Of a stretch of DNA of 64,000 nt, positions 1 to 27,030 are shown piece after piece. The stretch's first letter is position 1; each line of letters starts with the position of its first letter. The notes below the pieces were generated by a model, which was not told the DNA's origin, did no database searches, and saw only the letters and a list, made by a program, of their open reading frames with translations. The translations under genes were made by a program, and so were the position numbers. This stretch comes from Thalia democratica (taxonomy: Eukaryota): NCBI GenBank assembly GCA_965202585.1, contig OZ241831.1, positions 43,338,001-43,402,000 on the forward strand. Reading direction: 5' to 3'.

Positions 1-3000
1 GATCTACACTACAGCTGATGCTTAGTTTAATTTATACTTCAATACAACTTAAACTTATAAAACCTTACAACTGTAAGAGTACTCTCATTTATCTACTTTA
101 TTTAGAATTTATGCATCATTTGACTTAAAACCCTGTTAATATAGTATTCTTAAATAGGGTCGTCTTTACGAAACATTTTTTAGATAGAACTGAAGTAAAC
201 ATACAAGTATTCTTCTAATAGCAGTTATAAAATTTTAAGCAAGTATGTGTCTGTTGGCAGCTTTACATTTAAACTAAATGTTTAAGTAAATAACTTTATA
301 CATAGGCGTTCAAAGACTTTCTTTTTAAAAAGCAGCGGTTTTCTAAAGATAGCGTCTTAAAATGCTTTAATTGTGCTCTTTTTTAGAAAAGTTGTTTTTA
401 AGTGTTCTAGTACTAGTATACTTTTGTATTTAACTTAACTACTCATGCAAAAACAAAAAATCAATATATTCGTTGTAAAAAATACAAATACTTTTTTATT
501 AAGTTCATTTTTCAATTCAAAGCATTTTTTAATAACTCTTATTCTAAAATTACATTTTTTTAAGTTAGATAATTATAGTTTTAAGTTTTATTTCCAGTAA
601 ATTAATGTACATAAAACTTTACACTTTAATCATTTATTATAATTAAACTACCATGTTATTAAAAATATATATTTTTAACAAAAATATTAATTGTCCTGTA
701 AAAACATGCTAAAAAGTTGTTAAAAATTGTGTTAAAACAAATCAAATTATCAATAACATTATTTTCATACTATCAAGTACAAAAATATATTTTAAAATCG
801 TTTTAACTCGCTAAATGTCACTCAATTTTATAAACAACATAATAGATCAACTTTATAACTAAAACATTTTTCTGAATGAAAATTTTTGAAAAATATAACA
901 CAACATTTTCATAAATAACTTATAAATTTTTCAGAAAAAGCGTTTTTTTAACCATATGCACGATTTTTGAAGTTAAAAAGTCAAACTAAAGAAACTGTGT
1001 TAGTTTTCAAATTAAAAACAAACAATTGTAATATTTTTCAAACGAAAGGGAACTTTCTTTATGCTAGTTTCAAACTTAATTAATTTTTCATATTTAAATG
1101 TTAAACAAAGTTATCTTTTTTTATCTGTTTAGGCAGGAAAACATTTCAAAGCTGACAAAAATGCTATAACACTCAAAGTATGTTTCTCAACAGGGTTTTA
1201 GCTTTTTTTTATAATTTGTTACCCTTGCGATTTTTCCAAAAAATTGCTTAAAACAGAAGCTTTGTATTTTATACGTTAAAAACGCAGTAAGAACTTTCAT
1301 GGGTCAAGGGTCATCTGAAGCCGTTGCAGCTGCTTGTGAAAGCTTCAATTTTTTAATCATAGATATTTTAACGACCTAAGTACATAGTACCAGGGTTGAA
1401 TGATGCATCTTAAGCATATAGAAAGTGCTCAAGTAGCCATCGAAGCAGCCACTTGAGCACACAAGTCTCGATGATAACACAAGTACCAGTGGTGCATTTA
1501 TGTATTCATATTTTTATTCGAATTGGGGTTCACTTCTGAAGTTGTTGTTTTGACTCATTCGAAAACATTTTCGATTATTTTGAATGATGACATGTTGACA
1601 TATCTTTTGTCGTTGGTTAGAGAATTTTTTTGGTAATAGATGGTTTTTTGTTTTAGATAGTGTTGAGTAACCATAATTTTTTTTTTCTGAATTCATCAAA
1701 AAGGTACTTAAATGCAAACTAAAACATGTAATGCACAAAAAAGTTATCAAAGTGTGTTAGAAAATTTTAAATAAGTTTTAACTAAAACAAAACAGAAAAA
1801 CTTTAAATAGTTTTACGAATATGTTGATGACAAAATTAAAATAAATAACAAAAACTTGTTTTACGCTAAAACCGTTGCCTTTAATTGTTTAAAAAAACTA
1901 AAATATTACAGTCTAAATAAGTTAAGTTAAAATACAAAAATACAAATATAGTTTAAACTTAATGATTTGAAATTATCAACGCTGATGTTTTGTTTTTTTA
2001 ATCCTACACTATATAAATTTTATTGACAATTTGAATAATGCTGAATAAAACATTTTAACTTTTTAGCGTATAGGCTAATCTACAAAGTAATATTTAGCAA
2101 TTTTTATATGAATTAATTTATCTAAACTAGAATACTAATTTTTATAAAAACAAAAACTTATAGTCTTCTAAAAAATTTAAATTTTCATTTAAGTTCTAAA
2201 TTTTTTAGAATATTTCAACTTACGAAAGCTCGTTAAATTTATTCTAAATACAAATAACTTTTACTAATTTTTTTGTATTTAGAAAAAATACCCTTTATAA
2301 TAAAATTATTGCCAACTAGGATTTATATACAAAGAAACGGTTTTAGACTAATTCCATCATTTTAAATTCTCTGGACAGCAAAAAAACAGAAAATTTTGAA
2401 CTTTGTCAAAACAAAGCTTCATTAAAAGTCGACCACCGCAGAGCTGAAACTCTCAGTAAGTTTGAGCTTGAGAGATTAAATTGACAATTGGCACAAATTT
2501 AACATAAGTGCCACTTACCTGCATGAGTGACATCTCAACTTTACCGCCACCAATCGGTCGCCACTGGTGGCATAATAGCCAAATAAACACCAATTAAATA
2601 GACTCTCAATTATATCTTTAATTAGTTTATCGGATATTGCTCACATTATTTTTTGCTAACTTCAGTAATGTTATTGAAAAATTTAAGTGGAGTATACTAG
2701 CGCATTTTATCTTCTTATTTTTTGAAGTAGTATGAAACTCGTAGTGTGTTTAAAAAAAACTGTACGTGTACGTTTCGTTTAAAACCTACTACCAAAACAA
2801 TCTACTGTGATACTTAACGCCAATTAAAATTATTAAATAAACAAAAAAATTTTTGTGTGTTTTTTGTTCTAAATTACTTAGTTAAGAAAAATTTATTACA
2901 TGTTTTTTGTGAGTCTAAGTATTAAAAAGAAAATAAACAAGTTAGTTAAAAGTTATTGACCTTTAAGTTTAATAGTTAAGTACTCATAAAAAATACATCT

Positions 3001-3330
3001 CAAATTTTGTGTTTGAATACTAAATGTAAGCAACAAACTGGTTCAGAAAATTTATAGAAAGCCTAAAATTGTTTTGAGTAAATATGTAAATACCACCTAC
3101 GCTCACAACAAATTATCACTTTATCTGATAACTTGCTTGTTAAGCAACGTATAAGCACATCAGCAATTTTGCAAATACTTAGCAGCCCGACGATTTTACG
3201 CTGTAATGAAAAACAAAAAGCTGGATATTTTATCGCGTCATTCATTGTAGTAATGTCTTGTCTATGTTTTCGTTAATCTCAACGGGTATTACCTACGTTT
3301 CAGCGTTGACCGTATCATTTGGGCAACTTA
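1..3330. repeat. Segmental duplication block U, collinear with ~61270-64000 (far-upstream region of Lmx1 copy B)
   Basis: Ordered matches: GATCTACA..CAGCT (1/61272), TAAATAGGGT..TCTTTAC (~151/61410), TTTAAAATCGTTTTA (~790/61820), CGTTAAAAACGCAGTAAGAACTTTCATG (1274/62071), GTCGACCACCG (~2428/63197), CCACCTACGCTCACAACA (3093/63774). Confidence 0.93.
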
Positions 3331-3438
3331 AACAACTGTTGATATTTTTCACGAAAAATGTCTCTTCTTTTTTTTTGAACACAAATCTTAGAAGTTCGAA
3401 TTTTGTGTTTTCTGTGAGCAACTAGACAAGAATACTTG

Positions 3439-3900
3439 TACTCACAAGCTCGGGTCGGAAGATAACTAGCAGGGCGGCGAGACGGCAAATTCGAGAAATA
3501 GTTGTTATCTGAAAATAGCAGCGGGCACAGCTGTGTTCTCGGTATCGATCAAAAGGGGATTAGCGCTTATCTCACTACTCGTGCATTCAGAGCTTACAAA
3601 AGAAGTGAAAACAAAGCAGGCACAGTGATCGACAGTTTCAATTACTTTCTTCTTGTGACGTCACAATTCGAACTGTTTAATAGAAAATATTCGTTGACCT
3701 GCAATCGACCCTTGAAGACAATTTTTGTTGGTCGATGTGTGACGACCAAAGATGAAAGCGATGCAAATTAAGGTAGCATTCTTGCGAGAATTACCTGAAT
3801 GGTGAGTTAGAAAGAGACCACCTACTTTTGTGTGTTGAAAATAATTGAAATTTTATATGGTGGTAATTTTATAAGTACTTTCAGTTGTAGCCTTTTCAGT
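3439..3900. promoter_or_regulatory. Conserved GC-richer downstream element D (candidate enhancer); copies at 3439-3900, ~5348-5660 (partial) and 44690-45130
   Basis: All three copies keep ATGCAAAT (octamer), TTCTTGCGAGAA, TTACCTG and GACCCTTGAAGACAATTTTTGTTGGTCGATGTG. TGACGTCA (CRE) is present at 3656 and 5443 and degenerate (TGACCTCA) in the third. Function is inferred. Confidence 0.5.
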
Positions 3901-6704
3901 TAGTTTTTTCAGTTAATTCATAAATTTTGGTATTTTTTTGTTGTCATTAACTGTTCTTTGTAAAAACGTTGATTTCGGAATATTTAATGTTTCTTCTGAG
4001 TATGATTAATTTTTTGACGCAAATTATGTTTTGTAGAAACTTTATATTATCAAATTCAAATTCAATATTTAACAAAGTATAAATTAAATTTTTAAAATAT
4101 AATGACGTTGTTATAAACATTTATCTAGTTGTTAGAAAAATCTGACACATGCTTTAAAAATTATAATCTCCTTAACTAAAACTTAGTTTGAATTTACATA
4201 TATGAAGAAAAAAGTCTTCTTTATAGTTCTATACTTTAGGAAAAAATTTACCAAACCATTTTCAAAAATAAGTACAATTTATTTTTCGGTTTGTTTTAAT
4301 TATAATGTTTGTCAAGTTTTAAACGTTTTGAAATTCCAGTTTTTTAAAGTTTTAATTGTGTATTATCTCTACATTAAATTTTTTATAAACTTATGCTGAG
4401 TAAATGAGGTATATAAAAAATTTCTTAGATCTTTATAAACATTTGAATAGAATTTAAACAGTAGTTTAGTTGAAGTTTTCCTTTATAATATTTTTCTGTT
4501 TTATTTTTGTAGGTATAAGGTTTAATGACTTAATTAACACCTAAATAATCCATTGAAAGTTTAATTGTTGTTACTACATGAATAAACTGTTTGGTTTTAT
4601 TACAGTTGAAACTTGTTTAAATTTAAGAAACTATTAAATTGAAAGCCGCAAAAACTACTTTTTGTGCTAACCAGGCAATAAGTCTTAAGCCTAAATATAC
4701 GAGCATCGTACCATAGAACATCTCTTATATTAGTCTTTTGTTGATGTGTTTACAGTGTAATTTCCAGCTTTTAGAACAAGTTGTTGTAAAGGGAAAATAT
4801 TTTTTGGACCTTAATCATTAATCGTAAAATAAGCTGAGGCTTGCATTAAAATTAAAATTAATATATAGGTATTTGTTTTATAGCTTGGAACGAAGCTGGA
4901 TGTAAACAGATTAGTAAAGTTATGAGTTTAAAACGTAAAAGTGTGAACAAAAAACGATAATCGGTAAAATATATTCAATTATTTGTCAAATTAAGATAAC
5001 AAGTACAAATATAAGAAAAATTTAAAGTTTTCATATATAGTTGTATATTTAAACTTTGGTTGTATTGTAGTTTTATTTCATTATTTATGGTTCATACAAA
5101 CATGCTTAACTTCATAGCTTGTTATAACAAAAATTTAGCTTTATTTACTCATTTAAACAGTTCACTTTAATTAAAATAAAAATATATTATAGCTGCAAAA
5201 TGTCTATTACGCTTTTAAATTAAATAACACATAAATTATTATTTCAAGCTCAGATAGAGTTTTACTATTTAAAAGTTAGAACACGATATTTTTAAGTTTA
5301 TTAATATATAATTGCATGAATTAAACACTTACATTTAATATATATTTAGGGGATTAGCGCTTATCTCACTACTCGCGCATTCACAGCTTACAAAAGAAGT
5401 GAAGCGGGTGTCGGGTGTTTTCCCATTTTCAATCTGTTGATGTGACGTCATAATGTAGGTTGTTTAATAGAAGTTATTCGTTGACCGGCAATTGACCCTT
5501 GAAGACAATTTTTGTTGGTCGATGTGCTATAACTAGAGATGAAAGCAATGCAAATTAAGGTAGCATTCTTGCGAGAATTACCTGCATGGTGAGTTTTAAA
5601 GAGACCACCAACTTTTGTGTATTGGAAATAGTTGCAAGTTTGTATGCTGGTAATTTTATTAGTGCTTTGGGACGCTAGATAAGCATATAGTACTACACAG
5701 CGATATAAGTACAATAGTCTAACTTTTGAGTTCGCACTTTCTACCTAAAAAACGTTTTGTTCCAAGTGTTAATTAAAATTAGAAAAAAAATACCTAAAAA
5801 TCTCTATTACTAACTAAGTTTTATTCAAAACTAAGTTTTTCTTTTATTTTATTCATATTTAATGAAACTAATCGAAAAACAAAAAAACATTAAAAATACT
5901 AATAAAAGTGGAGTAAAATAAAATTGAAAACGATCATAAAGAACTGTGCAGTTTCCATTGAAATTTTAATGCTTAAATAGAAATTAAGTAAATATCAAAA
6001 GTTCTTACTAAAACTTACACATTCAAAAAATGAGCAGTGTAATATACTTTTGCATAAATATAACATAAAAAATGTCTAGAAGGCATTAAAAAAAAAGTTT
6101 TGAAACGAAATTTTTAAATATTAATTTTATTTTGAAGTAAATGCTTTGGAAAGCATGTCTGTATTTGTAGCTTTTTAATTTTGGAAACACTTTTGTTGTT
6201 GATAAGCTGTTTTGAAAAATAATCAATACGTTATTTGTATTAAAAATTCATTTTTTGCAATATTTGTAGAATATTGTTTATTTTACAAAAATCTGAAAGA
6301 AGTTACTTTGCATCATGTAAAATAAATTTGTAACTTGTTTTACATGACTATAATTAACTTAAATAATTGCTTACCATAAAAATAAAAATCTATAAATAGA
6401 GTTATGCGGTTCAATATACTAGTTTTGCAGTTTAGTTAAAAGCACTTTAGCTTACAATGTATAATAGGTATACCTAAAAGTTACAAAAATATGTAAAAAT
6501 AGTTTTCAGCTAGGTATTAAACTCAATTACTATTCGTTGTACAGAAATATTGTAGTTAAAAAAGCTTTTACAGTGGTTTTATGAAAAAGCGTTGTCCACA
6601 TTTTTATTGATTGTTAAAAAGTTTATACTGCATTAAAACTGTAGTTAGAAAGATTGTGTAAGCATACCAGCGAACTTTTGTGCATACGGTTTAAATAGTT
6701 GTAT

Positions 6705-9700
6705 TCATAAAGTGTTAAAGTAGTTGTTTTGCATGAAAAGCAACTTGTCTATTGGATTATTTTTATAACTCGGCTTGCTGCATTTATTTTCTACCCAAAA
6801 AACTTCTTCGCACAAGTTGGAAACTGCCGAATCTTCATTGTTTGAAATCTCAGCTTGGTTAGGAGGCTTGTTGTAACTCGGTGCCTGGTTGTAGCACAAT
6901 TCCTTGCCGAAGTTTTGTGAGAACGAGTTTTCGTTTGACCCCTGATGCGGTTTGCAAGTCGGTGCGGAATTGGAGCAGGCCATTTTGTCTTCATCAAGTT
7001 CGAAGTAGGGGAATTTCAGTAAAGTACTGTCATTCACAACAGAAAATTCATAGCTCCTAATGTCTGTAGGAAAACATAATATTTTTAGTTAGTTCAAGAT
7101 AGTCAAATGCTTTAAAAGTTGATCTAAGGAAAAAGAAAGTTCACAAAGCGAATCATTATGTAAAAAATAAAGTATTATATAATTGTATTATATAATATAA
7201 ACGTTTTAATTGATAATTCAATTTGTCTGTTAACTAAATTATTCGTTTTGTCAGGTGAATATATAAACTAGTGATCTACCGGATTTTATTTTAAAGTAAA
7301 TCTGGTCGAATCCGGTGCCGAATCTTATTTTATATTTAACACACGGCTAGATGTGGATCAAGATAGGATTCAGCCGTAAATTATGAAAATATCAAAATTT
7401 CTCGTACAATCTAGTATATTTCAAAATTAACCTTAAAGAACCTAAGACAAATTGTTTGTCCTTCTTAACAAACTCCAGAATATCTAGTGTAGTATTAAAA
7501 TATTTCGGCGAAAACTATTGTAGCTTTCACAAATTTCCTTTAAAACTTAGTATAAATTTTAAAATTTTCGTGTAATATTTAGTAGAATTTTAAACAGTTT
7601 TCACGTCTTATTAGTTTGAATTTCAAAACTCCCTTAGATATGTCTATTACTTTTTATTTTTACTTTTTTTAGCACCTTTCACCTTATCACTCACATAAAG
7701 TTCGGACGCATCCGGATATTTTGAAATTTCGTTGATAGTTGGATCCGGTATTCACTATGTAAACTCAAACAGTAGACTCAGAAATCTTACTTCGATTGTA
7801 AGTTTATACTTATTTAGAAAAATAAACAACCTACTCTTCATCGTTGTGATGATGTCAATTTGATTGTCTTCGTCCGAATTATTGTTTCGACAAAACTCCT
7901 CGTTTGTAGGAGACATGAAGGTTTCATCTGTGGAATTCAGATGCGGAGTTGTCGGCATTGACTGGTTGGAATACAAGCTCATCGTTTCATCTGAAAATTT
8001 TGTGATGAGTCTTGTTTAAATCATGTTCAAGCACAAAAACTTAGTTAAGTAAACAGATAGTTCACATTTGCCTTTAAAACCACTAAATTTATATACCAGG
8101 GATATAGACAGACAGTTTAGTAAACTGAAATTTTTGATTTTTTAATTAAGCATATATTGAACCTATAAATCATATACAACGTTTTATTATTTAAGTATTA
8201 TTCTATTTTGCACATATACTTATCTTACTCAAATTACTAATTAATTTATAATTTTGTTATTGTAAATTGTTAGTCTATCTCTTATTAAACTTGCTTAATT
8301 TTCCCTAATTTATTACTTATGTATTTTTTGATGAAACCTTTTACTTACTGTTTACTTACTCAAAGTTTAACTTCAAAATTAGTTGATAACATTAGTAATT
8401 GAAAAGGGTCAGCTAAAATATATCTTACTTGTTTGCTCAATAAAATGTTTTTGAATGAATGTGTCTAAAGTTTTTGTATAAACAAAATAAATTTATATAA
8501 GTTTTTCAAATAAAACTCACTGTCGAAATCGGTGTTGCTTGCTTTAGGTAAACTCTTGTCCCCTGAACTTTCTTGTTTTCGTGCTAATTTTTTGATCTGT
8601 TAGAAAAAAAGTGTAATAATAAAATAGCTTAAAAATTAATCATTTTATATATTTATTATATTATTATACTCATATATAATATTTAAATTAAGAGTACTTT
8701 TATAGATCCTGTACAAGACGTTAAACTATATTCAAGTAGTGTACGACTCTTTAACCGAAAACGTTTTCCTACACTAGGTCATCGTACCAAATTTTTTAAC
8801 GCCTCTTTCGTACGTTCAATAAAATTTAAGTTGTTTAAAAACAAAATGACAGTTTATTAAAATGATAAAACAATTTAACTTTTATCTAAATACTGAGAAT
8901 AGATGAAATTAAACAAGTAGAGTTTTATATAAAAGAAAACAAAATTCGTTTATCACTGCTCAATCTTGATTTGCTGTTATTTTGACAACATCAATTTTAA
9001 AATCTGTACAATATGTTTAACATGACAGGAGTATGTGTTATTGTAGGACGAACACTGCTTACAATTAATTTAAATAAAGTATGGGCTGTAATGAACTAAA
9101 AACTAGTTCCCTGTGTACTAAACAAGTTTAAGTTATAATTAAATCATTATTATTGTCTACTGAACTACATAAAAAACGCTCAAAAAGCTTGGTCTAAGAA
9201 CCTGGTGTACGAAAAAACCTTTTAGCAATCGAATAGTACACTATAACAGTTTAATGTCATGTCCAGGACATTAATTTTACCAAACAAACATTTAGCTTAA
9301 ATTTTTATTTTAATTTAAAATGTAAATTTTATAATTAGAAATCTTAGTCGTAAAAATATTATAAATACATAATATATACAATTCATATTAAAATGCACCA
9401 ACGTTTTGCAGCAGGAATTAAACGTTTAGCGAAGTTAAAACACTATTTTTATGAAGAGAAATTTTTTAATAAATGACGATAAGTCTGTCTGCTAAAGTCA
9501 TTGAAAAATATATAAAAGCTATAAATGTTGCTGCGATAATTAAATAAAAATAGCTTAGTATAAAAAGTCTATAAACTATATTTTCGTACATACAACCAAG
9601 TTTAACTAACTTTGGCTCGTTGATTTTGAAACCAAACTTGAACGACTCTAGGACTCAGACCTGTTTCGTTTGCTAAAGTTTCTCGTGCCTAATATATTAT

Positions 9701-12700
9701 TAAAAATTAACAAATAAAAACTTTATTTAAAACTATGGTGAAGATAAGCAAATACTAACCTAATTGAAAATTAAGAAAATATAAATATACGATATTTTGT
9801 TAAGTTTTACAAAAAATATACTGTTTTTTTTTGTCAATTGTTTTTAAGAGTAGGTGGTATAACCTTGACAGGATAATTTATGTCTTTTTTCAATGTTGAA
9901 TCATCCACATACGTCATAAGTATTTCAGTCATATTTAAACTTAACTTTTCGTAAGACATCAAATATTTTATTTAAAAAAAGGTAGTTAATATGTTTGACA
10001 TTGTTAAATTAACATATCTAAACACGAATAAGTTTAAATTTAGCAAAATTAACTTAAAAGTGTTTAAACAACATTTGAAATTTTCTCTTATTAATAAAAC
10101 AAAACAAAAACAATACAAACTTTACAACTTTTATAAGTATACAAGTTTTCAAAAACAAACAATAAATGTTTCCAACCTTTCTGGTAGGTTTCTGAAAAAC
10201 TTCAAATGCTGATTTAAACTTTCTACGTTGAGCTGTGGTCAGAATTGTCCTGGGTCGCTTCACTCCTCCCTGCTGGCTCCTTGGATCGTCTCCTCCGTGG
10301 ATGAACATACTTATGTCTCCGTGTGTGTCCTCACCTAGTTTTCTGTACCTCGCAGCGAGAACGTTGCACGAGTTCTCTGTTTGAAAAATTAAGAATATAT
10401 TTTAGTACTGAATGTTAGCTTATCTGAAAAAGATTTTGATATTGTAAGCTTAAGAAGTAGTAAAAAAATTAAACTTTTAAAGTAACGCATTTAGTTTGAT
10501 AAAATACTCCATAAAGGTTTGTGGCATTGTTTGTGAAGATTGTGTTTTACACATTTGAAAAAAATATACTTGTTGAAACTAAATATTAAAAAAAATAAAT
10601 AAACAATGCGTTATCAATTATAGAACCTACATCTGACATATTTAAAGATCCTGCTTCGGTCTGTTTATTAACGCAAGTTGATTGGTTCATTACAAAATTA
10701 CACGAGAGACAGGTAATAAGGCCACCATTTTCATCTCGTTTGCAATACTGTTCTCCAGGCTGTTTGTAAGCAAGTTTTTAACAATTTAGTTCCTTAAAAA
10801 TTAAAGATTTAAGAAGTAGAAACGAATTTAACTTATACTAATTTTTTTATTCAAAACTTTGTTTAAAAGTTAAACAAATATTAAAAGTCTTTTAAAACTT
10901 TAAAAAAAATATTTTTAAGTAATTTTAGAAGTATTTAAATAATTTGTAATAAGTTTCAAAGTAAAATGTATGTTAAGCTTTAATTATAATCAAGAAAATC
11001 ACACCAAATAACAAAACAAGTATTTCTGAACAATAAAAAAACTTTTTAATAAAAATTTATTGCAATTCACTCACCTTCACCAGTCGGCTGCATATTTCGC
11101 AGGAGAAGCACTCAACGTGAACGGGGCCGGGAAAAACCTTGGAGTTGGCGGCTATTGGCTGGCAGCAACGTTTGCACAGCTTCAACCTGTAAGTTGAACG
11201 TTGAATGTTTATTCTCCACGTTTGTGTGAAGTTTCAATGTTTATTTTTAATAAAACTTGTGTGAATATGGAATATTGATTTGTGTGCTTTTAGCTTGTGA
11301 TCATGTGCCGGTTTACTTTCTAGACAAGCGGCCTGTCAACTTGTGAGTGAAAATTTAATTGTTGTTGTTTTTTTTCACAAGTTTGCACAGCGCGACATGG
11401 CAAACAAAAATGCTGTCAGCTGTTAAAATTTTCTGTTGTTTTTAACAGCGAAGGTGTTTTACAGGTGCTCATATGAACTTGCCGAATTTTGAGACGAGCG
11501 ACGTCGAAGCTGCATTGTGACGTCATAACACAGCAAGACAGCAGAGAAAAACTTATGAAGCGCCTTCACTGTTGCGACTATGGCTCGCATTGAAACACCT
11601 GCCGAGGTGACTAAAGCAAAAACTTTCTCTCTTTGGAAATAAAGCCGAAAGTTTTCAACACAGAAGTGGGACACGAACTTGTGAGAACGCGTCGACAGCT
11701 GGGTTGCCACGGTAACGAGGTACGCTTTCGTCCAAACACCGTTTTTCTGTCAATCAAATCGAAGATGCGCCTAAACACCTTTTCACGATGAAAAGTTACG
11801 GTAGCTTTGTCTGCCATTGTGACGTCACTGTGAGACGGGCGTGAAATTCTCCCATCTGCTGGACTTCGTGACTTAAGTGAACAGAAAGGTGACTCAGCTG
11901 CTTTGTGATGATTGACGCAAATCTACAGAAGCAAAATACAAACTTTAATAAAAGAAATTGAGTGAGATGCACTTTCGTAATGGTGGATGCACGATGGGAA
12001 CTTTAAAATATTTTTGAGTTTGTTGTTGGTTTTAATTTACGAAATAAGTGTTGGTTGTATTAATTGTCTTTGCTTAATGCTAGTAGAGGATGTATAAAGT
12101 CAGTCTAATGTGTTGTACTTACCATACACATGTAGATTGTAAAAATTGTAGTTTGAAATTTAATAAAAGTGATTTAAGCAACTTATTAAATCTTATATGT
12201 GTTAAATTACCCAAACACAAATTTCTTCAATTTAAGAGACTTTCTCAACAAACTTGCAAAACAGTTCACAATTCTGCCCTCACTTTTGAAAGTTTCATGT
12301 GAAAATTCAGGTGAGAATCTCTCAGTGACAATTCAGTGGCGATGTGAAATTACATCAAAGCGTCAAAATTTTCCCATAAAAAACATTGGTATCTATTTTA
12401 GGAGCTAACATAAAAATGTTTTACTTGTTTTCGCGTATATACTTATTTACAAGCATGATAAACTAAACATTATCATTTGTTTTAAATCGCTTTAAAACAA
12501 CTATGCTTCATTCAATACAAAATCGTACCAACACTTTGATAGAGACAAAGTTGAAAACTTTAAACTAAAAGTGTTGTACAAAATAAGCTAACTTAATATA
12601 TATACAAAATAACTCACTAAATTGTTTATTTATTTTTAGCAGTAGGCTTAAAAAATAAAAAATAAAAAGTCATTTACTGTGACAGTTTATACACAATTAA

Positions 12701-15700
12701 TCTGTAAACTAAAGAAATTAATTGTGAAAGATAAACGACTTGCAAGCGTTAAATTTTAACATGTTTGCAATTTATTCTTGCAAAAACGGCCGACCTTACG
12801 AAAAGCACTGAATTTTTAAAAAGCTCTAAAATGCTTTTAATCTTGAAATAGCTGCAAATGCATTAAAAATTTTTTTATCGGCTTAACACAACTTAGCACG
12901 CACTAATGTTTGTTTATTGTTTACACTCGTTTGTAAGTCCACTCAAAACTTAAGAGGTATAAATGTAAAACTCAGTTATAAATGTATAGTAGAAAGCCTT
13001 CGTGGAAATTACATTAATACTGCACTTTAATTTCAAAGAAAAGTTCTTAATAAAAGTTGACCGTTGATACGCTCTATGAATTATTGAATTTTAACTTTAA
13101 AGTAATAGTTTTTCGGTACAATAAATTTAAAAATCATAAACTCTCTCGAAGTAGAAATGTTTGTGTGTTTTACTAAAATGATAAATTGACTATTAGATTA
13201 CTTTTATGTTTTATTTGCCGATACGCTCCTAGTAAATAAATTTATTTTAGTTTTAATAAAAACAGAGTAAGAGTTTAAACTAGTTCAAAAACTTGGCTTA
13301 AATTAGACATTTAGTTGAAAATTTTTTAAATTTGAAGATCAACACCAGGTAAAAATAGTCAAATTTTCAACTTTAATGTCAAAGTGTTTTAAAGATACAT
13401 GCGTAGCGCTGAACAGCTTAACTTTAATTGTTTATTCTCATCTTGACATTGATAAAATAGAGGTTTGTTAATTCTGAAAATATCTAGGCTAGCTATTTGT
13501 ATATTATTATTAGCTATGTAAACAACCGAAACTTTCTATATAGAAACTTTAAACATTTTAAAAAATTAGCATACGAAGTAGCTAGTTGCTTGCAAAATAA
13601 AAAATAATTGTCAAATTAATCAAGTTAACATTTTATCAACAACTTATTTACACCTGCTTGCAATTTCCGGCTGAGCCCAAATATCTTCACTAATTATATT
13701 CGTTCTGACTGAAATTATAGATGTGAGCTAATTTGTTTTCGTTTGCAGACAAAATAAGCTGACAGTTTCGGCTAAAAGGTGTGAACAAGTTTTATTTCCT
13801 GTTTACTGCCAAGCCAGTTCAATTCGGACGCGGGCTTGCCAAAACAAAATTATAACAAAATAAAACTCAATTAAACACCTGAGCTAAACAGAGTTATATT
13901 CAAACATATATAAGCTCACAAGAGTTAAATTTTAGTTTTTGAACCGTCAAATAAAACTTTTTTTTAACTAAAAATTTAGTTTAACGTTTACATCTAAAAA
14001 AAATCGATACTTAACCAAAAATAATATAAATTTTGATGAATTGATTTTTTTAATTCCTGCAAAAAAAAATTAATGCTTCCTCTTAACATGCATTACAAAC
14101 ATTATTAGTTAGTAAAAACTATGTGAAAAAGGCTAAAAAATTTAAAACTCGACTTTTTTGCATAAAAATTGTCGCGCTAAACTCAATTTCTTTGTTTTAT
14201 GAATGGTAGTTGTTTAATTCAGTTAAGTAATCTCTCTCCTCTGCGCAAAAACTTAATACGATCGAATTCCGATTCGTTAAATTTTCACCGGCTGCCGTTT
14301 GCCGCTACTTAACGCAATTTGACCATTGATTAGTTTTGACGAAAATTATTTTGTTTCTTTCAGGAGTTTATTTTTATATTGGCTACTCGCTTCAGAACAA
14401 ATCGAACTAAGATATTAAATTCAGCTGACATTCTCAAATGGTAATTGAAAGAACACTGAGCTGAATTAAATTAGAAAAATGAAAGAAAGTTTTTAGCTGG
14501 CATAATAAGTGTAATAATAAAATATTTGGTCGGAAAAAATCACTTTATAAGCTTAAAAACCATTAAAATATTTACTTTTGTAATAATTAGGTAAAAATAT
14601 AGACTAAAACAAAAATTAAAACTACTTATTTTAATAAAACATTTTTTTGTATAACTCATAGATATCTAAGAAAAAATTCTATATCGGAACAAATTAATCA
14701 TATGTGATTGATTTAAAAGACTTTAAAGCGAAGTTTATCATTTTATGTAATACATCAAAGTTTCAAAGGTCGTTGAGAGATTTACTAATAAGAAAAATGT
14801 ACATTTAACTTTAAACATGAAAATGGAGATGTTTTTATTTTTTTCTTTAAATTGAACAACTCAAAAATAAATAAAATAGCTAAAAATCTAAATTCGATAG
14901 TTTCTATGATAATACTAATCTAAAAACTTTTAAAATTTTAAAATCATGTTCTAATTGACTAAGTTAAATTTTTATTTATTTAACTATTAAGCAATCTTTA
15001 ATTTCTTTAAAACTAACTTTAATGAACAAATATATTAAAAGGAAATTCGAAACTAGCAAAATGTATGCGTCACTAAAACTTAAATCAAATGTATATTTAC
15101 TTTTAAAGTTTTACTTCTTATTACCTTGTGTAGTGTTGATGACAGTAGAAGTTCCCCTTTCTGACGTAACACTGGCCCACTAACACTTGATTGCACACAC
15201 AGCACACCACGCAGTTCTCGTGCCAATTTGATTGGTCAATTTTGAGGAAATACCGGTCTCTGATTGGCTTACTGCATCCCGCGCAGTAATGAACGCTGCT
15301 GATTGGATGTTTCTGTTCCATTGGTGCTGATTCGTTCAGTGAGTTTGTTGAGCAAAGTGATGAGCACATTCTTTCTTGCACTGTTTTAGTAGATTGTATA
15401 TGTAAAAATAGTGCACTATTGTTGTTAACAATATAATGCCACAAAAGTCTTTTAAAGTTAAAAATAGCAAATTAAAAAAAAACAAGAAAATCAAGCCGTG
15501 AGTAATAATTTTCTCAAAATTTCAAATCAATTATATTAATTTTTATAGATCAAACCTTATGGAAAATTTATGTGTGAGAACAACTTAAAGTGAAATAAAG
15601 TATTGGCAAAAAAGTTATTATGATTTACTTAACGTTCACAAGCCACAATTAATAAATTATTCACATCATTCGTAATAAAAATGTTCGCTAAAAGATGGAC

Positions 15701-15873
15701 TTTTACAAAAAAAAGTAAAAGTCCTTAAGGTTTTTTTTTTAACATAAAAAAGTACCTATGATTTTAAGAATTATAAAAAACTTACTTTTTAAACAATATT
15801 TGTTCATTTCTGCCTCACTCGTGAAATGACTGAAGGACTGAGTTGGTGAAACTTTGAATGTTAAAATTACCAT
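6705..15873 (-). CDS. Lmx1: Lmx1-type LIM-homeodomain transcription factor, copy A (~485 aa, 9 coding exons)
   Basis: Hand-assembled exons (minus strand): 15873-15786, 15380-15125 (LIM1, CAGCSKPIRDRYFLK..WHENCVVCCVC..CHQHY), 11186-11075 and 10759-10627 (LIM2), 10376-10177 ([28 protein letters not shown]), 9688-9611 ([26 protein letters not shown]), 8596-8521 (IKKLARK..), 7990-7835, 7063-6705 (C-terminal [14 protein letters not shown], like Lmx1 NPIDRLYSMQSSYF). All junctions are GT-AG and phase-compatible; total 1458 nt. Homeobox introns fall after RK and after NQRAK, as known for Lmx1 genes. The exon-4 donor (AG|GTTCTA) is the least certain. Confidence 0.92.
7269..7757. mobile_element. Non-autonomous hAT-like TIR element (~490 bp) in the last intron of Lmx1 copy A
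   Basis: Ends TAGTGATCTACCGGAT / ATCCGGTATTCACTA; 8-bp TSD ATATAAAC (7261-7268) / ATGTAAAC (7757-7764); internal CCGGAT repeats. Copy B shows the empty site with a single ATTTAAAC (49641-49648). Confidence 0.85.
11300..12400. promoter_or_regulatory. GC/CpG-richer intronic block in Lmx1 intron 2 (candidate enhancer); paralogue ~52620-53700
   Basis: Two CATTGTGACGTCA (CRE at 11518 and 11820), four RTGRGAA CSL-type sites (11681, 11994, 12311, 12371 reverse) and several CAGGTG/CACCTG/CAGCTG E-boxes in an otherwise very AT-rich intron. Confidence 0.45.
14230..14470. promoter_or_regulatory. Conserved non-coding element in Lmx1 intron 2 (paralogue ~55700-55940)
   Basis: High-identity island flanked by unalignable DNA; includes a 57-nt identical stretch (14411-14467 = 55883-55939). 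Confidence 0.6.
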
Positions 15874-16569
15874 ATTACATTGTACTGAAAAATTATTAGT
15901 GTATTAAATTACAAGAAAAATAGTACACAGAAAAAAATGGCCGATATACACTTTAGAAAAATGGTGCTTGTTAAATCTTTGATTACTTATATGAGATAAT
16001 TTTTAAATTAAGTAAGCTAAAAAACTAATTATAATAATAAACCAAAGCTTTAATAAAAATATTTTTATTTTATTTTAATTAAAAGATTCCAAATTTTTAC
16101 AGATAAAATTTTTAATTTAAAGTTAAAGATTTATGTACTGTTTTTTAATTAATTAAAGAAGTATAGAGTTCTATGAGAGGTTTACACGTTTAAGAATTTT
16201 GCTATGCACATTATTTTTGAGATACCAAATATGTTCATAACTTTTAAATATACACATATAACCAATAAGTTTAAAAAAAACATATCTGTTTAAACTTAAA
16301 CACTTTTATAAAAATGATTTTAAATTTAATGTATTCAACTATCAAATAATAACGGTTTATAAAAAGCTGAATTAAGTTGAATTTTTTTAAAACACTATTT
16401 GTTCATTTAACAATCTGTTTTTTTTTATAAATATTTGCAATAAAATTAATGCTTGTTTAAAAAAAAGCATTTAACAAATACTCTACAACTTTTTAATCAA
16501 TATCTAAAGGCAAAAAATAAAAGTTAAATAATATTATAATTACGTGTTCTTCTTTAAGCATCACTGAAA

Positions 16570-16720
16570 TGACACAATGGTCTTTCTTGTGTGTATCGCC
16601 ACAGAAACCATGACAACAAACATGATGCGTAAATTAGCTGAAATTGTAGCATAATTTAGTTATTCGTTTTTATATTTAGCAAATTTAATAAGACCGCACA
16701 AGCTGCTTTTGATATCAAAA
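16570..16720. promoter_or_regulatory. Conserved non-coding element upstream of the Lmx1 ATG (paralogue ~57850-57990)
   Basis: ACAGAAACCATGACAACAAA..CATGATGCGTAAATTAGCTGA..TAATAAGACCGCACAAGCTGCTTTTGA is shared by both copies amid divergent AT-rich flanks. Confidence 0.65.
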
Positions 16721-17569
16721 TTTATATTTTTTCTACTTAATAATATTTAAATAATTAAAGGGTAAAATAATATATTAAAATATAAACATAAGAAAGTTTA
16801 ATGTACTTTGACCGTAAAATTTTGTACTTTTTACGTAATGAAAATGTGGTAAAAAACTACTAAGTCAATTTTTTCTTGAAAGTAGACTTAGAACAAATAC
16901 TTAGAATAAACTAAAATGTGCGTATAACAGCATACACCATTAAAATTATAAACGATTATAATAAGTATTAACTTTTATCTTTAAGTTTAAATGTTTCAAA
17001 ATCAAATATACACTTTTTATAACTTATATACAAAAAAAAAAAAATTATAAATATTTAAACTATTTATATCCAAAATATTTCTATAATTTTTTTTTTAATT
17101 TAAAAAAAACTTTATGCATTTTTTGAGGTTTTTAATAGATCAAAAAATAGAAGTTTATGCATGAAGCTTTATTACAATTTTACGCCAAGCTATTGGAATC
17201 AAGATAAATGTTTTCTTGGCTACTGAGTAACTAATGTATTTCAAAACTTACTAAAATATATAGTTAAGAGTGTATGAACTTTGAACTAAATTACTAAAAT
17301 AAAAGTAGAAGCATTCAAATTATATAACTTTTTTTTTTGTTTTTGTTTTCAATAACATTTTAGTTAATAAAATCAAAACTAATTTGTTTTAGAGTATATT
17401 GTAATAAATTCTGTTTAAAATCAAGTATACACCTTTTAGAAATAGTGTGAAATAAAAAAAGCAAGACTTGTATTTAATTAATTGAAAAATTTTCATAGTT
17501 ATGATATATAAACCTTTTAGTTTTTGATAAAGCAATTTGATTGAACTTAAACTTTATAAGATAAACATA

Positions 17570-18130
17570 TTAAACCCGGATAACTTTTTTTTGACCTGCA
17601 GCGAAAATGCTAATTACCACTTGTAACAGTCTTTTGTTCGTCATTACAAAGTGACATTTCTCCTTTAAAAGCAACCAATCAATGTTTGTCATCAAAGTTA
17701 ACAGGTTTATTTTTAAACTCGGTTGCTTGATAATTACATGCTTTTGTTTTTATTATATCATAATAAAAGCTTTTTACAAAATGATGTACATGTTTTGAGA
17801 AAAAAAGGTATTTTGAGACATTTATTTTATCAAGTGTTAAAACTTTGTTGCTTGTAAATCTAATCTTAAAAAAATTTCATAGCCGTATAAATACTGTGCA
17901 TCGTTTTACCTTGAACTACGAAACAACAAAAAAAAATTAGTTTTCATATTTCAACGATAAGACAATGTTGTAAAACCACACTGAAGAATTTAACGAAAGG
18001 TCACATGTGTAAGCCTAAAATGGCGAAGAATGTTGTTGAAATGGGGAATCACCGTGGCAGAAATCATGTTTGACGGATGTTTATACAAACAAAGAACGTT
18101 GTAACACATTGTTTTCTTGTTTTTATTAAA
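17570..18130. promoter_or_regulatory. Conserved non-coding elements upstream of the Lmx1 ATG (paralogue ~59130-59720)
   Basis: Shared blocks AACCCGGATAA, GACCTGCA, ATGCTAATTACCACTTGTAACAGT, GACAATGTTGTAAAACCACACTGAAGA and GGGGAATCACCGTG. Confidence 0.65.
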
Positions 18131-19388
18131 AAGTTTGAACTATAACTTGATATGTTTTAGGATCAATAATTAAATATAATAAATGGTGTTATTCGGTCTT
18201 TGTTTAAATGAAAAATTAATTTCGTAAAAAATGTTTATTTATAAATTTAAACATAACAACTTAACATTTATACTTAATAAACTATTTAAAAAGTAATAAG
18301 AAAGTTTTCTTTGTTTCAAAAAAAATATATGTTTTTAAAATAGAAAACAAGCTATAATATTTTAAAAACCTTTATGCTTTTATATAGTTTTTAAATAGAA
18401 GAAACTTTGAAAGTTTGTGCTAAACAAAACATGTACCTCGTAAATAACTTATCAGTATTAAAACTTGTCTTCAACAAAATTTTTAACTTAGCTTTACTAC
18501 AACTGTGAATTTTTAATAGGCACAATCTATAAGATAATCGACAATATTAAACATTTTTAACAACAAAGATCAACAAATGCTTCTAATCTTTTATTTTCGT
18601 TTAAGCCTCTTACTTTAATATATTTAATATCTACGGATTTTTCTTTGTGTCTATTTTTTAGTTTAAAATTGGGTATTTGATTTAAAGAACTTTAAAAATT
18701 ACAATATAAAATATACAGTATTTTATAAATATAAATATTTGATTAGATAAGTATTATTTTTTATATAATATATTTTTTTGAGATATAACGAACTAAAAAG
18801 TATACTTAACCTTTGTTATTGTTTTTTTAGATGTCTGTAACTTAAACACTTGTGTTAATAAAATTTGACTTTTGTATGGGCTTAAAGTAGGTTATATAAG
18901 TTGTTTATTAAATACTGACAAACGCTATAATTTTGTTTAAAATCACAATTTGGAAACTAAATGTTTATTTGAAAAGTATCTGTATAGCAATACAATTTTT
19001 CATAATAAAAACAATAAAATTACAGCTTATTTTTTTCAATAATTTTCAATAATTTGATATAAAATATTTTAAATAGCATAAACACAATTACTTACTAACT
19101 GTAGTCAGTTTAATAAAAAACATGTTTTTTTAATAACTTAGCCTAAATGTTATGTAAATTCTTGCTACAAATAAACCTAAAGCTAAAAAAAATGTAATAT
19201 AACTAAATCTAAACAAAAAAATAACTTACTTAACACTACTTTAAAAACAACTTAAAATAACTTTCAAAGCTTTAAAACTTACTACTGGTCTAAATTTTAT
19301 TCGCATTGAAAGTTGTCAGTTGTATTTGGAAAGTTGGCTTCAAACTTTTAACTGAGTTTACTTTTTACCTATCTCATCTCTCACTTAC

Positions 19389-19435
19389 TTTCCTCTCTCG
19401 TTTGCCGCCATTACTTTTCAAAATTTCTCTCGCTT
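19389..19435 (-). other. Putative non-coding first (5' UTR) exon of Lmx1 copy A; paralogous exon at ~61150-61195 in copy B
   Basis: Conserved block in both copies ends in AAA|GTAAGT (donor at 19388/61149). A conserved TTTTTCAG acceptor lies 11 nt upstream of the coding ATG (15884/57459), so a spliced leader exon is implied. The 5' end is not defined. Confidence 0.55.
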
Positions 19436-19869
19436 TATTTTATTAAAGCTAACCTTCGAAACTTTTTTGAAAAAATAAATCTATATTCGGTTCTATATTT
19501 TAATCTATAAAGAATACTAAAGTATACGTATAAATAAAATATCTAGTACACTCATAATCTTAGTAAACTTTTTTAGAATATACTTATAATTTAACGTTAT
19601 ATCTTGTAAATAAATTTTTCCTAAATAAAAGTTTTTTTTAAATAATATTTTTAAATAAAGCAGAATATAGCATAGGTGTGCAGAGAATTGTTGAGTAAAA
19701 AGCCGCATTTTTGGTTTGAAAAACACACGTTTTTTATTACTTCAACAGTTACAGGCATAACTAACTTACTTTATAAAAAATTAACCTTTTTATTAGGAAA
19801 CAGTATTGTAAATAATTAAAAATAGAATGAATTTTTGAAAAGATAATTTAAATTTTTAATTAAATGTTA

Positions 19870-20781
19870 GTATACATAGAGTTATTACAACTTTTGCTTT
19901 TAAATTTTTAACTCTTTACATTTATATACCTATTTATATCAAAAACATTTTTTTAAAGTAATTTAGTCAATGATAATTGAAATTACACTAAATAAAATGT
20001 TTAGACTTATACAAGTAAATTAAAATATCTTTAAATTACAGTTAAAATTTAGCCTGATGGTGAAGGGATTTTAATGATGGTTTTGAACTTTTTTTGAGTA
20101 GAAAATTTAAAAAAATCAAGATTAAACTTTTTGGCCAATAGATATACAAAAATAAAACAACTTAAATAAAAATATTAAAATACCAGTAAAATAAAAAAGA
20201 ATAAATTTTAAAGTGGTGTAGTGATCTAAAGATGTTTTGAAAACTCTCTAAACTGAACTTTTCAAGGTTTAAACCCAGTTGGTCGACCCATAAACAAAAA
20301 ATATAAATGTTTAAGTACAAAAGCTTCACACAACATTATTATATACAATCAATTAAGTAAATTAAAATTTTGTTGAAAATATTTTACACTTTTCAAATAA
20401 AATTGTACTTACTAGTTGAAAAACAATACATAATCAAAAGTTATTTACACTAAGTAACAATTTATTATGGGAACCATAAGCATCTTAGTAAAATGTTTCC
20501 CAGAAAAAAAATGCTTCTTTAAGACTTTTGCCTATTTTCAAGTCACGATTAAAATTTTATTTGAAATCTATTTCAGCTGGGCAAAAACGAGCATTTTTTG
20601 TTGCTGCAAATTATAATCTTTCAGTGTTATAAATTTAACATTCATCATTCAAAGTATATCAAATAACCAAAACAAAGTCAATAAACAACTATTTAGTGAT
20701 ATTCTAAGATTATTTTTTTGTTTTCTTTTTTTTTTTTAGGGTGTTCACACGAAACAGGAAACCAATTTAAACATGCCCATG
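19870..20781. mobile_element. Left-truncated copy of the TIR element at 23568-24759
   Basis: About 900 bp of direct similarity to 23870-24759, ending ACATGCCCATG (versus ACACGCCCCTG) and followed by GTGTACAC. No left end found. Confidence 0.65.
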
Positions 20782-21152
20782 GTGTACACCGGTGTACTCC
20801 TTGAAGACCACTGCTGTAAACTATAAATACTTGCGTTATAATACTAGTTTAACAAAATAATGATTTATTTTATAAGCTAACTAGTACCAAAATAAATTAA
20901 AAATTCACAATAAACTCTATTTGTGTTTTTAGGAAAAGGTGTTTTATATCTATTTGAAAGAAGTGTTACAAAAATGTATAGTTATGTCAAAGATTTATAT
21001 TTTTTTATACAATATACTTTATTTCCTTTTTCAGTACAAAAAAGTTTTCTAGTTTTTTTAATTAAAAATCCTAAAAAAGATAGCTAAACAAGATTTTTTT
21101 GATTTATAAAGTTTTAATTTTCAATTTTTTTTTAAATTTGTTACTACAGAAC

Positions 21153-23567: not shown

Positions 23568-24759
23568 CAGGGACGTGTCTAGACTTTTTTCTAAGGGTGT
23601 TCACAACTTTTTTTTTTCTTAATTTGCCGCTTAAGTACGCATTTCTTAGGTATGCACTGCCAGTTAAGCACGCAATATTTAACCGAAAAACTTTGTGTTT
23701 GAAATGCTTTTTTTCTGCTTAGAAATAACAAAACATTTAAGTAAAAATAGAAAAGTATTATATTTATTTATTTATTACACTGTATAATTTTTAAATAGAA
23801 TAAAAACTAAAAGAACAAGAAAAAAATTATGAACATACAAATTTTGATTTAGATAATAGTATAGATGGAGTTCTTTCAAATTGCTCTTGTGAATTCTAAA
23901 TTCTTTACATTTATATATCTTCTAATATTAAAAAAATAATTTCAAGTAATTTAGTCTATTAAAATTGAAATTTTACTAAAATAATGTTTAGACTTATACA
24001 AACAAATTTGAAATCTTTAAACTATAATTAAATGTTTGCCTGATGGTGCGGGGATTCTTATGATGGTTTTGAAACTCTATGAAAATTTAAAAAAATAAAG
24101 AATAAACTTTGTGGCCAATAGATATACAAAAATAAAACAACTTTAATAAAAATTGAAATTTCACTTTACAAAATGTTTAGACTTATTCAATTAAATTAAA
24201 ATATCTTTAAATTATAAATAAATGTTTGCCTGGTGGTGCAGAGATTCTAAAGATGATTTTGAAAACTCTCTTAATTGAACTTTACAAGGTTTAAAAGCTT
24301 CACAAAACATTGTTATATACAATCAACTAATTAAAATAAAATTTTATTGATTAAATTGGATATTATCTAAGTAAAATTGTACTTACTAGTTGAAAAATAA
24401 TACTTAATTAAAAGTTATTTACAGTAAGTAAAAATTTATGGTGGGAATCATTATCATCTTAGTAAAAAGTATCCCAGAAAAAAAATGCAATTTTAAAACT
24501 TTTACCTATTATCACGTCACAATTAAAATTTATTTGTAATCAATTTCAGCTGGGCAAAAGCGAACATTTTTTATTTAGGAAACTTGTAATCTTTCAGTGT
24601 TATAAGTTCAACATTCATTATTCAAAGTTTATCAAGTAACCAAAACAAAGTCAATAAACAACGTTTTTAGTGATATTCTATGAATCTTTTTTTTGTTTTT
24701 TGTTTTCTTTTTTTTCAGGGGTTCACAGGAAACAGTAAACTAGTTAAAACACGCCCCTG
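23568..24759. mobile_element. Non-autonomous TIR element (~1.2 kb), probably hAT-like
   Basis: Ends CAGGGACGTGT / ACACGCCCCTG; degenerate flanks GTTAACCC / GTATAACC; internal ~200-bp tandem duplication; second partial copy at 19870-20781. Confidence 0.65.
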
Positions 24760-27030
24760 GTATAACCATACCTCAGTTCCGCGTAGGTAATAAGGTACTT
24801 CAGTGAATAAGTAAGCTTTTTTTATTATGTTGTTTTTCAATACAATAAAAAAAGGACTTAATAAAAATCATTAACAAAAAAAGTTAAAAAACTAGAATGA
24901 TATTTAGAAAACTATCAAAATTAACCTGTGTTTCACAAAAAAAAATTTAAAAGAACCTATGTCAGCCTCTAATGTTTTAGAATTTTGTCCTAATGACCTG
25001 AGGTCCTGTATAAACCTCTTTCTGTTCAAACAAGGAAAAGGTTTAAACTTAAATCTATGTAAGAAATTTCAATTAAAAGAAATATATTTACCGAAAATTT
25101 TTAGCTAAGTAAAAACTTTGATTAACTAATAAAGAATCATTTTTTTCTTCTTTTTTAATTTTTACAAACATTTTTGAATCACACAGGATGACCCTATCAA
25201 GCTTTAAATTCTTTACAACTTTTTAAAGAACTCGCTTAAGTTATCAATATAATTCAGAGTTGCCATGCTATTATGGTAGCTTGAATCATTTTAGAACTTC
25301 AGGCTGGTTGAACTTATTTGAACTCAGCCTCCTTCACGATTGAATTTTCTTAAAATATTTATGTTGTAGATCTTAGATTTTTTAAATATTATTCTAGCCG
25401 TTAAGATTTTGAGTTTTTAAATTTCTTACAAGCTTTTCAAAGCCTCGTGATGTCTTAAGCTAGTTTGATACAACTAATACTAGTTTTGGTCACTAGGCTG
25501 AATTTTGGTTTCAAAATAGTCTAACTTGATAAAGTTATAATCTTTCAAATTAATCAGAAATTCTTTTTGATAAGACTAAGTAATATCTTTTTTCTTCTCT
25601 CCGCACCTGATAAGAAATATATATAGTTTGATCAGATGGATTTATAATATGATAGTTGGATTAAAAAATTTCTGTTTAAGTTTTCTAAATATCCTTTAAC
25701 TCCAGCAAAAAAAATATTATCTTGTTTCCTGTCATTAAAAACTTAGATGTAAATATGAAAAATGGAAGCTAAATATCATGTGAACGACAAAAATTATTTT
25801 TCAAATAATTATTTAAATCAGAATTTAATTTTGATAGTTGGTTGTTTAATAAGTTATTTACTTTTTTACAAAAACTAAAATCTTCTTACAAATATTTGAA
25901 TTAAAGTATCTTTTGAAAAATTAAGTATGAAATTATTCCTTGTTTAATATAACTTAGGTCTAAGAGAGTTTAAGGTTGATTGGTTTTTTAAACTCCAGCT
26001 GGTTAAGAAAACTGTAGGAAATTCTGGTTATTTAGTATCCTTTTTAAACTTTAGAATATTTTTTTTGTAAATATTATAGTGTTTTTTTATTCTCTGGTAA
26101 TTTGAATTTTCAATTTATTGTATTAATTAATTTGTTTTTTCGGAAATATTTTAGTTATTTAACCTTATTAAATAATGATGTGTTTCAGTTTTTGACTTAT
26201 AAGGCTTTTTTATAGTTTTTTCTATTAAAAAACAATCTAATATATTTTAATGACTTAAAAAATATTTTTGAAACTTACAAAGATATTTTTACTAGTTCTA
26301 GCTTTGAAGATAATGAAAAATTAAGTAGCATTGCCTTAAAAAGAACAAAATAAGTAAAATGTGCTTGGTTTATTAAAAATAAAGCTAGAGACAATTTAAT
26401 TAAATTTAAGCATAAGTTTTCTACTGCTAGGTATAAACCTAATTTTTTTTTTATGAACCAGTTGAATTTAGTTGGAAGTAAGTAAAGAAAAGACATGTAT
26501 TTTATTCAGTATTTAGGTTTTTCGCACACTCAGATAATTATCTGACATGTGCTCGTTTGAATTTTTTGTTGTAAAACACTTTTTATTTTTGATAGTTTTT
26601 TTTAAATATAAGACCACTTTTTTGACTATCTTTAAACATTGCTTGTATTAAGTCATTCTAATGTTGTATGGGAAAACAGTGTATTAAAAAATTAGCTTAC
26701 ATGTAAAATGATGCTGAAAAGTTTATAAGTTCATTGTTTAAATTTGTTTTTTCTTTTAAGTACTTAAGTGGTATATATAATTTGATTTAACAGTTATCAA
26801 TTAATTAAAATATTTGTTATTATTCAAAATGAATTAATTATAACAACTAACATTTAGGATGCGAAATGAGAAGAATCATATCAGCGCAGCATCAAGTGAA
26901 CAAAAATCTGCACATGTTGAGTAAAAAGTTGACCAGAAAACCCAGCTTTCAACGAGTCCGATTAAACTTTAAAAGTGTTTCCTCTAATGCATGTTGACAC
27001 AAAATAAATTTAAAGTATTTTAAAACTTAA

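Follow-up and report, generated by a model that had tools for sequence, protein, structure and literature searches.

A 64,000-nucleotide stretch of the Thalia democratica genome (assembly GCA_965202585.1, contig OZ241831.1, positions 43,338,001 to 43,402,000), hereafter the window, was subjected to computational analysis, with a focus on the non-coding DNA at its left end (positions 1-3330) and on the LIM-homeobox genes found on either side of it. The contig carrying the window is referred to as C7 (window at C7:43338001-43402000) and a second contig of the same 802 Mb genome as C10. The genome is very AT-rich, and the G+C content of the window was 27%. Array comparisons covered the window and 100 kb on either flank (264 kb), and negative coordinates denote positions to the left of window base 1. 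Positions 1-3330 very probably represent a non-coding spacer in a large and old birth-and-death array, in which a LIM-homeobox gene of the Lmx class is repeated in tandem. Each unit of the array, 18-23 kb in length, contained one eight-exon gene, encoding a first LIM domain (LIM1), an atypical second LIM domain (LIM2) and a homeodomain, together with about 10 kb of upstream DNA.

Genes in the window and on its flanks

Gene A was predicted on the minus strand with eight exons, GT-AG boundaries at all introns and an open frame of 452 amino acids (aa). Exon 1 (15125-15369) has two in-frame ATGs and encodes LIM1, which scored 50.2 bits against the Pfam LIM profile (cut-off 22.9) and matched the LIM1 of Lhx4 in the PDB with an E-value of 3.6e-13. 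LIM2 is interrupted by an intron, with its first half encoded by exon 2 (11075-11186; Pfam LIM positions 1-34, 19.5 bits) and its second half, with the residues ...YCKRD...CLSC, by exon 3 (10627-10759). A linker and the N-terminal half of the homeodomain are carried by exon 4 (10177-10376), which was found in 16 places in the genome, helix 2-3 of the homeodomain by exon 5 (9611-9688) and the homeodomain end, IKKLARKQ..., by exon 6 (8521-8596). Exon 7 (7835-7990) was placed by the GT-AG model, and exon 8 (6705-7063) encodes the C-terminal part with the stop codon. An acceptor-like AG just upstream of exon 1 suggests an undetected exon of the 5' untranslated region.

Two candidates for further coding sequence were tried and rejected. 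Three open reading frames (ORFs) in intron 1 (11462-12002, minus strand) are interrupted by stops in other copies despite the conserved DNA. A hidden micro-exon or alternative splice site that would restore a normal LIM2 was discarded because the junction frames are closed by stops and no other AG or GT is present.

Unit B (44686-61198) was collinear with 3434-19437. Its gene, gene B (49153-56947, minus strand), was modelled with exons at 49153-49526, 49720-49875, 50111-50186, 50654-50731, 51501-51700, 51952-52084, 52400-52511 and 56703-56947, and has an open frame of 441 aa starting at the second ATG (56899), the first one being mutated to ATA. Its exon 8 has lost the downstream acceptor and retained the upstream in-frame one. 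Across the array, exon 8 (6705-7110 and counterparts) has two in-frame acceptors 15 nt apart, at least one of which is kept by every copy; the upstream one is lost in gene A, and the downstream one in gene B and in two further copies, d2 and c4. The C-terminal endings ...NNYFTSL and ...YNSLPLEFS sort the copies into two 3'-end types.

At the right end of the window, the start of the repeated element D of unit C occupies 63710-64000, and the gene of this unit was found intact and open beyond the window at 67625-79481. An initial annotation of this DNA, made from the letters of the window, had expected a further element D or unit near 64100, and unit C does begin at about 63.7 kb. The same annotation had also predicted, to the left of base 1, the 5' end of a further gene copy, with its ATG about 3.8 kb away, and had made this depend on Lmx exons being found within about 15 kb of the window. 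All eight exons of such a copy, c4, were located at -5335..-13803 (exon 1 at -5335..-5578, exon 8 at -13466..-13803); the start codon lay farther out than proposed, at about 5.4 kb, with the LIM1 exon 5.3-5.6 kb away. The predicted copy exists, but it is a pseudogene, and it is this pseudogene whose upstream module is formed by positions 1-3330. A 1-bp deletion lies between its two possible start codons, exon 3 has a CAA to TAA change at codon 129, after the LIM domains and within C7:43327782-43327910 (seen in the alignment, with one TAA given separately by the genome search), exon 7 has a further 1-bp deletion at about C7:43325008, and one of the two exon 8 acceptors is lost.

Assignment to the Lmx class

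Domain and structure searches were performed exon by exon, and exons were joined only for translation and for the estimation of synonymous (dS) and non-synonymous (dN) divergence. The homeodomain was matched over two exons, with 13.1 bits for exon 4 (profile positions 1-28) and 42.5 bits for exon 5 (Pfam Homeodomain positions 30-54), while exons 3, 7 and 8 matched no Pfam family. Among PDB chains, the best match of exon 4 was human LMX1A (E 5.9e-8 over 29-30 aligned residues), followed by Lhx4 (0.046), with no match to Islet. The LIM-homeodomain matches of exon 5, again among PDB chains, were LMX1A (8e-10), Lhx4 (6e-8), ISL1 (1.5e-6) and Lhx9 (1.5e-5).

In all copies the homeodomain was split by two phase-0 introns, after ...KPTRK and ...QNQRAK, which we take from human LMX1B to be the positions used in other phyla. 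The same two positions were found in one further, more distant single-copy Lmx-type gene outside the arrays (C10:18364275-18369008, at C10:18.36 Mb), and the LIM1 of the array gene is 44% identical to the LIM1 of this gene, whose LIM2 exon lies between C10:18364430 and C10:18368790. Srivastava et al. 2010 (PMC2828406) reported that the homeobox is interrupted by two conserved introns in the Lmx subfamily and that Hydra, Nematostella and Trichoplax have one Lmx gene each. In Ciona the Lmx class is represented by Lmx1 and by Lmx1-r, the latter also known as Lmx-like (PMC11001920).

On these domain matches and intron positions, the array gene is assigned to the Lmx class, with a homeodomain nearest to LMX1A among PDB chains. 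The initial annotation had named it Lmx1; the Lmx-type homeodomain agrees with this, and the parent of the array may have been Lmx1 or another Lmx-class gene such as the tunicate Lmx1-r. In common with LMX1A, LMX1B and the Ciona genes Lmx1 and Lmx1-r, the array gene has the predicted domain order LIM, LIM, homeodomain, the second LIM domain being atypical, and it resembles known Lmx genes in the N-terminal half of the homeodomain, for which LMX1A is the best PDB chain, and in the two homeobox introns. It differs from them in being present as 18 linked units rather than as one or two genes, in a LIM2 that is interrupted by an intron and has a second finger either shorter than usual or reconstructed with a CxSC farther downstream, and in a 170-residue C-terminal part without a Pfam family.

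Spacer X and other conserved non-coding DNA

Collinearity was tested by self-BLASTN of the window. Positions 1248-2617 aligned with 62045-63386 (68.2% over 1432 columns, E 5e-137) and positions 3029-3302 with 63710-63983 (87.6%, E 4e-94), both matches being collinear and lying directly after the end of the unit B upstream region (19127-19437 vs 60860-61198). The only matches of positions 1-1247 were two other array spacers, at -20656..-18997 and -73093..-71433 (78%), and 61270-62044 contained no counterpart of these positions. The collinearity originally described between 1-3330 and 61270-64000 was thus recovered for 1248-3302 against 62045-63983, and positions 1-1247 were unpartnered there. 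Element D, which had been noted to follow at 3439, was found at 3434, with 3434-4637 matching 44686-45868 (71%, E 4e-151). No ORF of at least 80 aa was found by the ORF scan of positions 1-3330, and no Rfam family was matched in positions 1-20000.

Positions 1-3330, termed spacer X, form the non-coding distal upstream module of c4, 6.6-8.6 kb upstream of its exon 1, and the corresponding module of gene B, X', lies at 62045-63983. In other units, copies of X were located 7-10 kb upstream of exon 1, including those of the outermost genes c0, d4, g1 and g5; since these have no neighbour on that side, X belongs upstream of the left-hand gene. Three blocks are the only parts of the spacer that could be aligned to the array on C10, against a background identity of 65-72% around them. 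Block X1 (1250-1590) was present in about eight units with up to 87% identity and matched C10 over 1155-1587 (71%), and block X2 (2430-2630) was present in ten units with 81-88% identity and matched C10 over 2492-2593 (82%). Block X3 (3020-3302), also in ten units, reached 93% over 3101-3200 and 84% to C10:8451881-8452052, and carries the palindromic GATA-type motif TTATCTGATAA.

Element D (3434-3881) was present in every unit (11 copies, 93% over 3501-3600), as was element D' (5348-5671), in which part of D is repeated in direct orientation within the same unit (3554-3881 vs 5348-5668, 82%). A block of about 150 bp at 16560-16720 (minus strand), which precedes exon 1 by 1.2 kb, may act as a promoter or an enhancer or may hold a 5' exon. 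It was present and near-invariant in all 12 units compared, hardly any of its columns varying even in units with pseudogenes (96% identity). This block is rich in TAAT/ATTA-type motifs and more conserved than the coding exons. From their conservation we infer that X1-X3 and the block at 16560-16720 may be cis-regulatory.

Extent and composition of the array

The DNA of unit A (1-19500) recurred collinearly over all 264 kb and in both orientations, with direct units as far as about 88 kb and inverted ones starting at about 89 kb (window coordinates). The period was 18-23 kb, roughly bearing out the unit of about 19 kb that had been proposed, and the unit boundaries were blurred. No kelch gene was seen to be duplicated along with the Lmx-class gene. 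The census was based on exon-by-exon whole-genome searches together with the alignment of nine full genes and of 3-kb loci. In the whole-genome searches, exon 4 was found in 11 copies on C7, 4 on C10 and 1 distant, exon 1 in 11 on C7, 5 on C10 and 1 distant, and exon 8 in 13 on C7 and 5 on C10, the ORF of gene A exon 8 being conserved in 17 other places. All array matches of these three exons were confined to C7:43.23-43.53 Mb and C10:8.46-8.54 Mb. Where 'three or more' copies had been envisaged, the census counted 18 units in both orientations: 13 on C7, eight of them direct and five inverted, and 5 on C10. Nine were open, one was doubtful (d3) and eight were pseudogenes or relics.

The direct units on C7 begin on the left with c0, which has two stops in exon 5, a homeobox exon, followed by c1 (open), c2 (2-bp insertion in exon 1), c3 (a relic without exons 1, 3, 4 and 5) and c4, the pseudogene that adjoins the window on the left; A, B and C, all direct, are open. 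The inverted units on C7 comprise d1 and d2 (both open), d3 (open, with the loss of two zinc ligands and one splice donor), d4 (open in every exon seen) and d5 (a relic consisting of exons 7 and 8 only). On C10 (8.46-8.54 Mb), g2 and g5 are open, and g1, g3 and g4 have stops or missing exons, in g4 a stop in a homeobox exon. Of the nine fully aligned copies, seven were open, c2 and c4 being frameshifted.

In c1 (C7:43254488-43254769), intron 3 is gone through a single in-frame genomic deletion between two GCA repeats, which also took about 17 flanking codons and joined exons 3 and 4 in a single open exon.

The presence of the unit on two contigs and in both orientations, the internal direct repeat D/D' in each unit and reverse-transcriptase debris nearby could also be read as signs that the unit is the cargo of a very large mobile element which spread to two chromosomes. 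This is highly improbable: the copies are strictly clustered head-to-tail in the two blocks on C7 and C10, no transposase or integrase ORF lies inside the unit, and the unit boundaries are not sharp.

Exon 4 versions in a second organism

Short contigs from the European Nucleotide Archive (ENA), from public metagenome or assembly data of another, related organism, encoded 15 or more different exon 4 versions, each with its own intron start, and none of these was identical to any array copy described here. One of the contigs represents the orthologue of the single-copy Lmx-type gene. These sequences suggest that the array is common to at least one related species. Some of the versions have deletions of the type seen on C10, so the C7 and C10 arrays may predate the split from that organism; this weak hint comes from a 66-residue alignment.

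Divergence, selection and gene conversion

Between open copies, pairwise dS ranged from 0.18 to 0.34 and dN from 0.07 to 0.11, and the median of dN/dS was 0.32; all dN/dS estimates are pairwise rather than from a tree-based codon model. By region, dN/dS was 0.05 in the homeodomain, 0.12 in LIM2, 0.25 in LIM1 and 0.43 in the C-terminal part. In the homeodomain, dS was about 0.34 and dN 0.016, and the synonymous excess was significant in three pairs (Fisher p between 1e-7 and 5e-11). Judged by these substitution patterns, the surviving open copies are under purifying selection.

Identity to unit A in non-coding DNA was 68-89%, except in a tract common with unit B. This tract, at 10127-13892 in A and 51451-55368 in B, was 96.6% identical over 2258 bp (10127-12383) and 89.6% over 1522 bp (12379-13892), and its flanks were 72-79% identical. 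Four partitions of the gene gave conflicting, strongly supported trees, in which A formed a group with C when the 5' part was used and with B when the middle was used; the A+B clade reached a support of 1.0 only in the partition of the shared tract. A distinct 3' end was common to c2, c4 and C. The conflicting trees, together with the A/B tract, indicate a mosaic structure of the units, for which gene conversion or unequal crossing-over is responsible.

The array had been described as young, and joining of alternative haplotypes by misassembly had been named as the finding that would overturn it. The dS and dN/dS values of the open copies, together with the non-coding identities, indicate instead an array that is old and selectively maintained, and neither young nor made of haplotigs. 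A single assembly was examined, so that haplotypes or collapsed or expanded repeats joined in tandem had to be considered as an artefactual source of the units. Between units, non-coding DNA diverges by 11-32% and shows numerous indels, which is beyond the allelic-level divergence expected of haplotigs. Of the 31-mers of gene A, 48-62% were present in sequencing runs of other individuals, giving an estimated divergence between individuals of about 1.5-2.4%, and divergence between units, with a coding dS of 0.18-0.34, is roughly ten times as high. The lesions are copy-specific, the units lie in both orientations and on two contigs, and the second organism has its own set of at least 15 exon 4 versions. 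Unit divergence, copy-specific lesions and the multiple versions of the second organism in effect exclude haplotigs and misassembly, and we consider an artefact of this kind very improbable.

DNA between units A and B

Gene A has lost its X module, and the position is occupied by about 25 kb of DNA without array homology (19501-44685), which separates units A and B. On the plus strand, this insertion contains an intronless ORF of 419 aa (29460-30719) that was matched in the ESM Atlas to a calpain-family cysteine protease (score 0.99, PF00648). An ORF of 149 aa on the minus strand (40367-40816) has reverse-transcriptase-like motifs (...DGVAMGSPLGP...YVDNIF...) and is probably retroelement debris. 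A direct repeat of about 0.95 kb was also found in the insertion (19850-20786 vs 23839-24764, 75% identity). A minisatellite (44105-44671) immediately precedes element D of unit B; its copies are offset by about 60-390 bp and are 84-93% similar, and one of its frames reads as a long acidic D/A repeat.

Discussion

The observations at this locus are best explained by a tandem array of Lmx-class genes, of which positions 1-3330 form one spacer. Unequal crossing-over and segmental duplication would have enlarged such an array, an inversion on C7 would have led to the head-to-head arrangement, a second array would have arisen on C10, and patchy gene conversion would keep reshuffling the units. About half of the copies are open and kept by purifying selection, and the remainder decays. 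More tentatively, the nine or ten open copies may be expressed, sub-functionalised Lmx-derived transcription factors whose LIM2 has been remodelled and is still strongly constrained; we regard this as possible but less than even in probability.

Several points weigh against the explanation by a selectively maintained Lmx-class array. The first half of LIM2 stays under the Pfam cut-off with its 19.5 bits, and the second half was unmatched when the exons were searched singly. The spacing of LIM2 is C-x2-C-x15-H-x2-C-x2-C-x2-C-x10-C-x2-D, in which the loop of the second zinc finger counts 10 residues instead of the usual 16-21 and ends in YCKRD, or x21-C-x2-C if the conserved CLSC, 21 residues downstream, is used. 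For three of the copies counted as open (d4, g2 and g5), the evidence consists of open frames in 3-kb loci or search tables rather than of fully aligned genes, and d3, though open, lacks two zinc ligands and one splice donor. Copy number and the lesions of c4 rest on one assembly. No run on record as RNA is present among the sequencing runs listed, and the splice model and expression are thus predicted only. Finally, gene conversion rather than function could explain the conservation of the non-coding blocks, pseudogene units included.

Some of these points would also fit an array that is dead as a whole, in which all copies are unexpressed pseudogenes with frames left open by chance or by the homogenising effect of gene conversion. 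Eight of the 18 units are visibly decayed, RNA runs are missing from those listed, and the non-coding blocks are as conserved as the exons even in pseudogene units, which implies that conversion can preserve sequence without selection on each copy. Conversion alone, however, does not reduce dN relative to dS, and the homeodomain has a dS of about 0.34 against a dN of 0.016, with a Fisher p for the synonymous excess down to 5e-11. In addition, nine copies maintain about 440-460 open codons across eight exons with intact splice sites. A wholly dead array is therefore unlikely, and an array with partly maintained genes is preferred. For the annotation of this region, the copy adjoining the window should be treated as a pseudogene, and genes A and B in the window as open.

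Lineage-specific tandem homeobox clusters that evolve by birth and death are known from the mammalian Rhox, Obox and Dux genes and from the lepidopteran Shx genes. The array resembles them in its tandem and inverted units, its many pseudogenes and its patchy gene conversion, and also in a conserved homeodomain combined with faster evolution of the rest. PRD- or Hox-type genes gave rise to those clusters, whose evolution is mostly fast. The array described here goes back to a LIM-homeodomain cell-fate gene, and its DNA-binding and LIM parts are under strong constraint, with a dN/dS of 0.05-0.25.

LIM-homeodomain genes are conserved selectors of cell fate, and most animals keep one or two copies per subfamily. 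An array of 18 units with about half of the copies under purifying selection is an unusual fate for such a gene, and our literature searches on Lmx arrays found no report of one. If the copies are expressed, the array would be a natural experiment on how far the amplification of a dosage-sensitive developmental regulator is tolerated, and also on the co-duplication of regulatory modules and the rebuilding of a partner-binding LIM domain.

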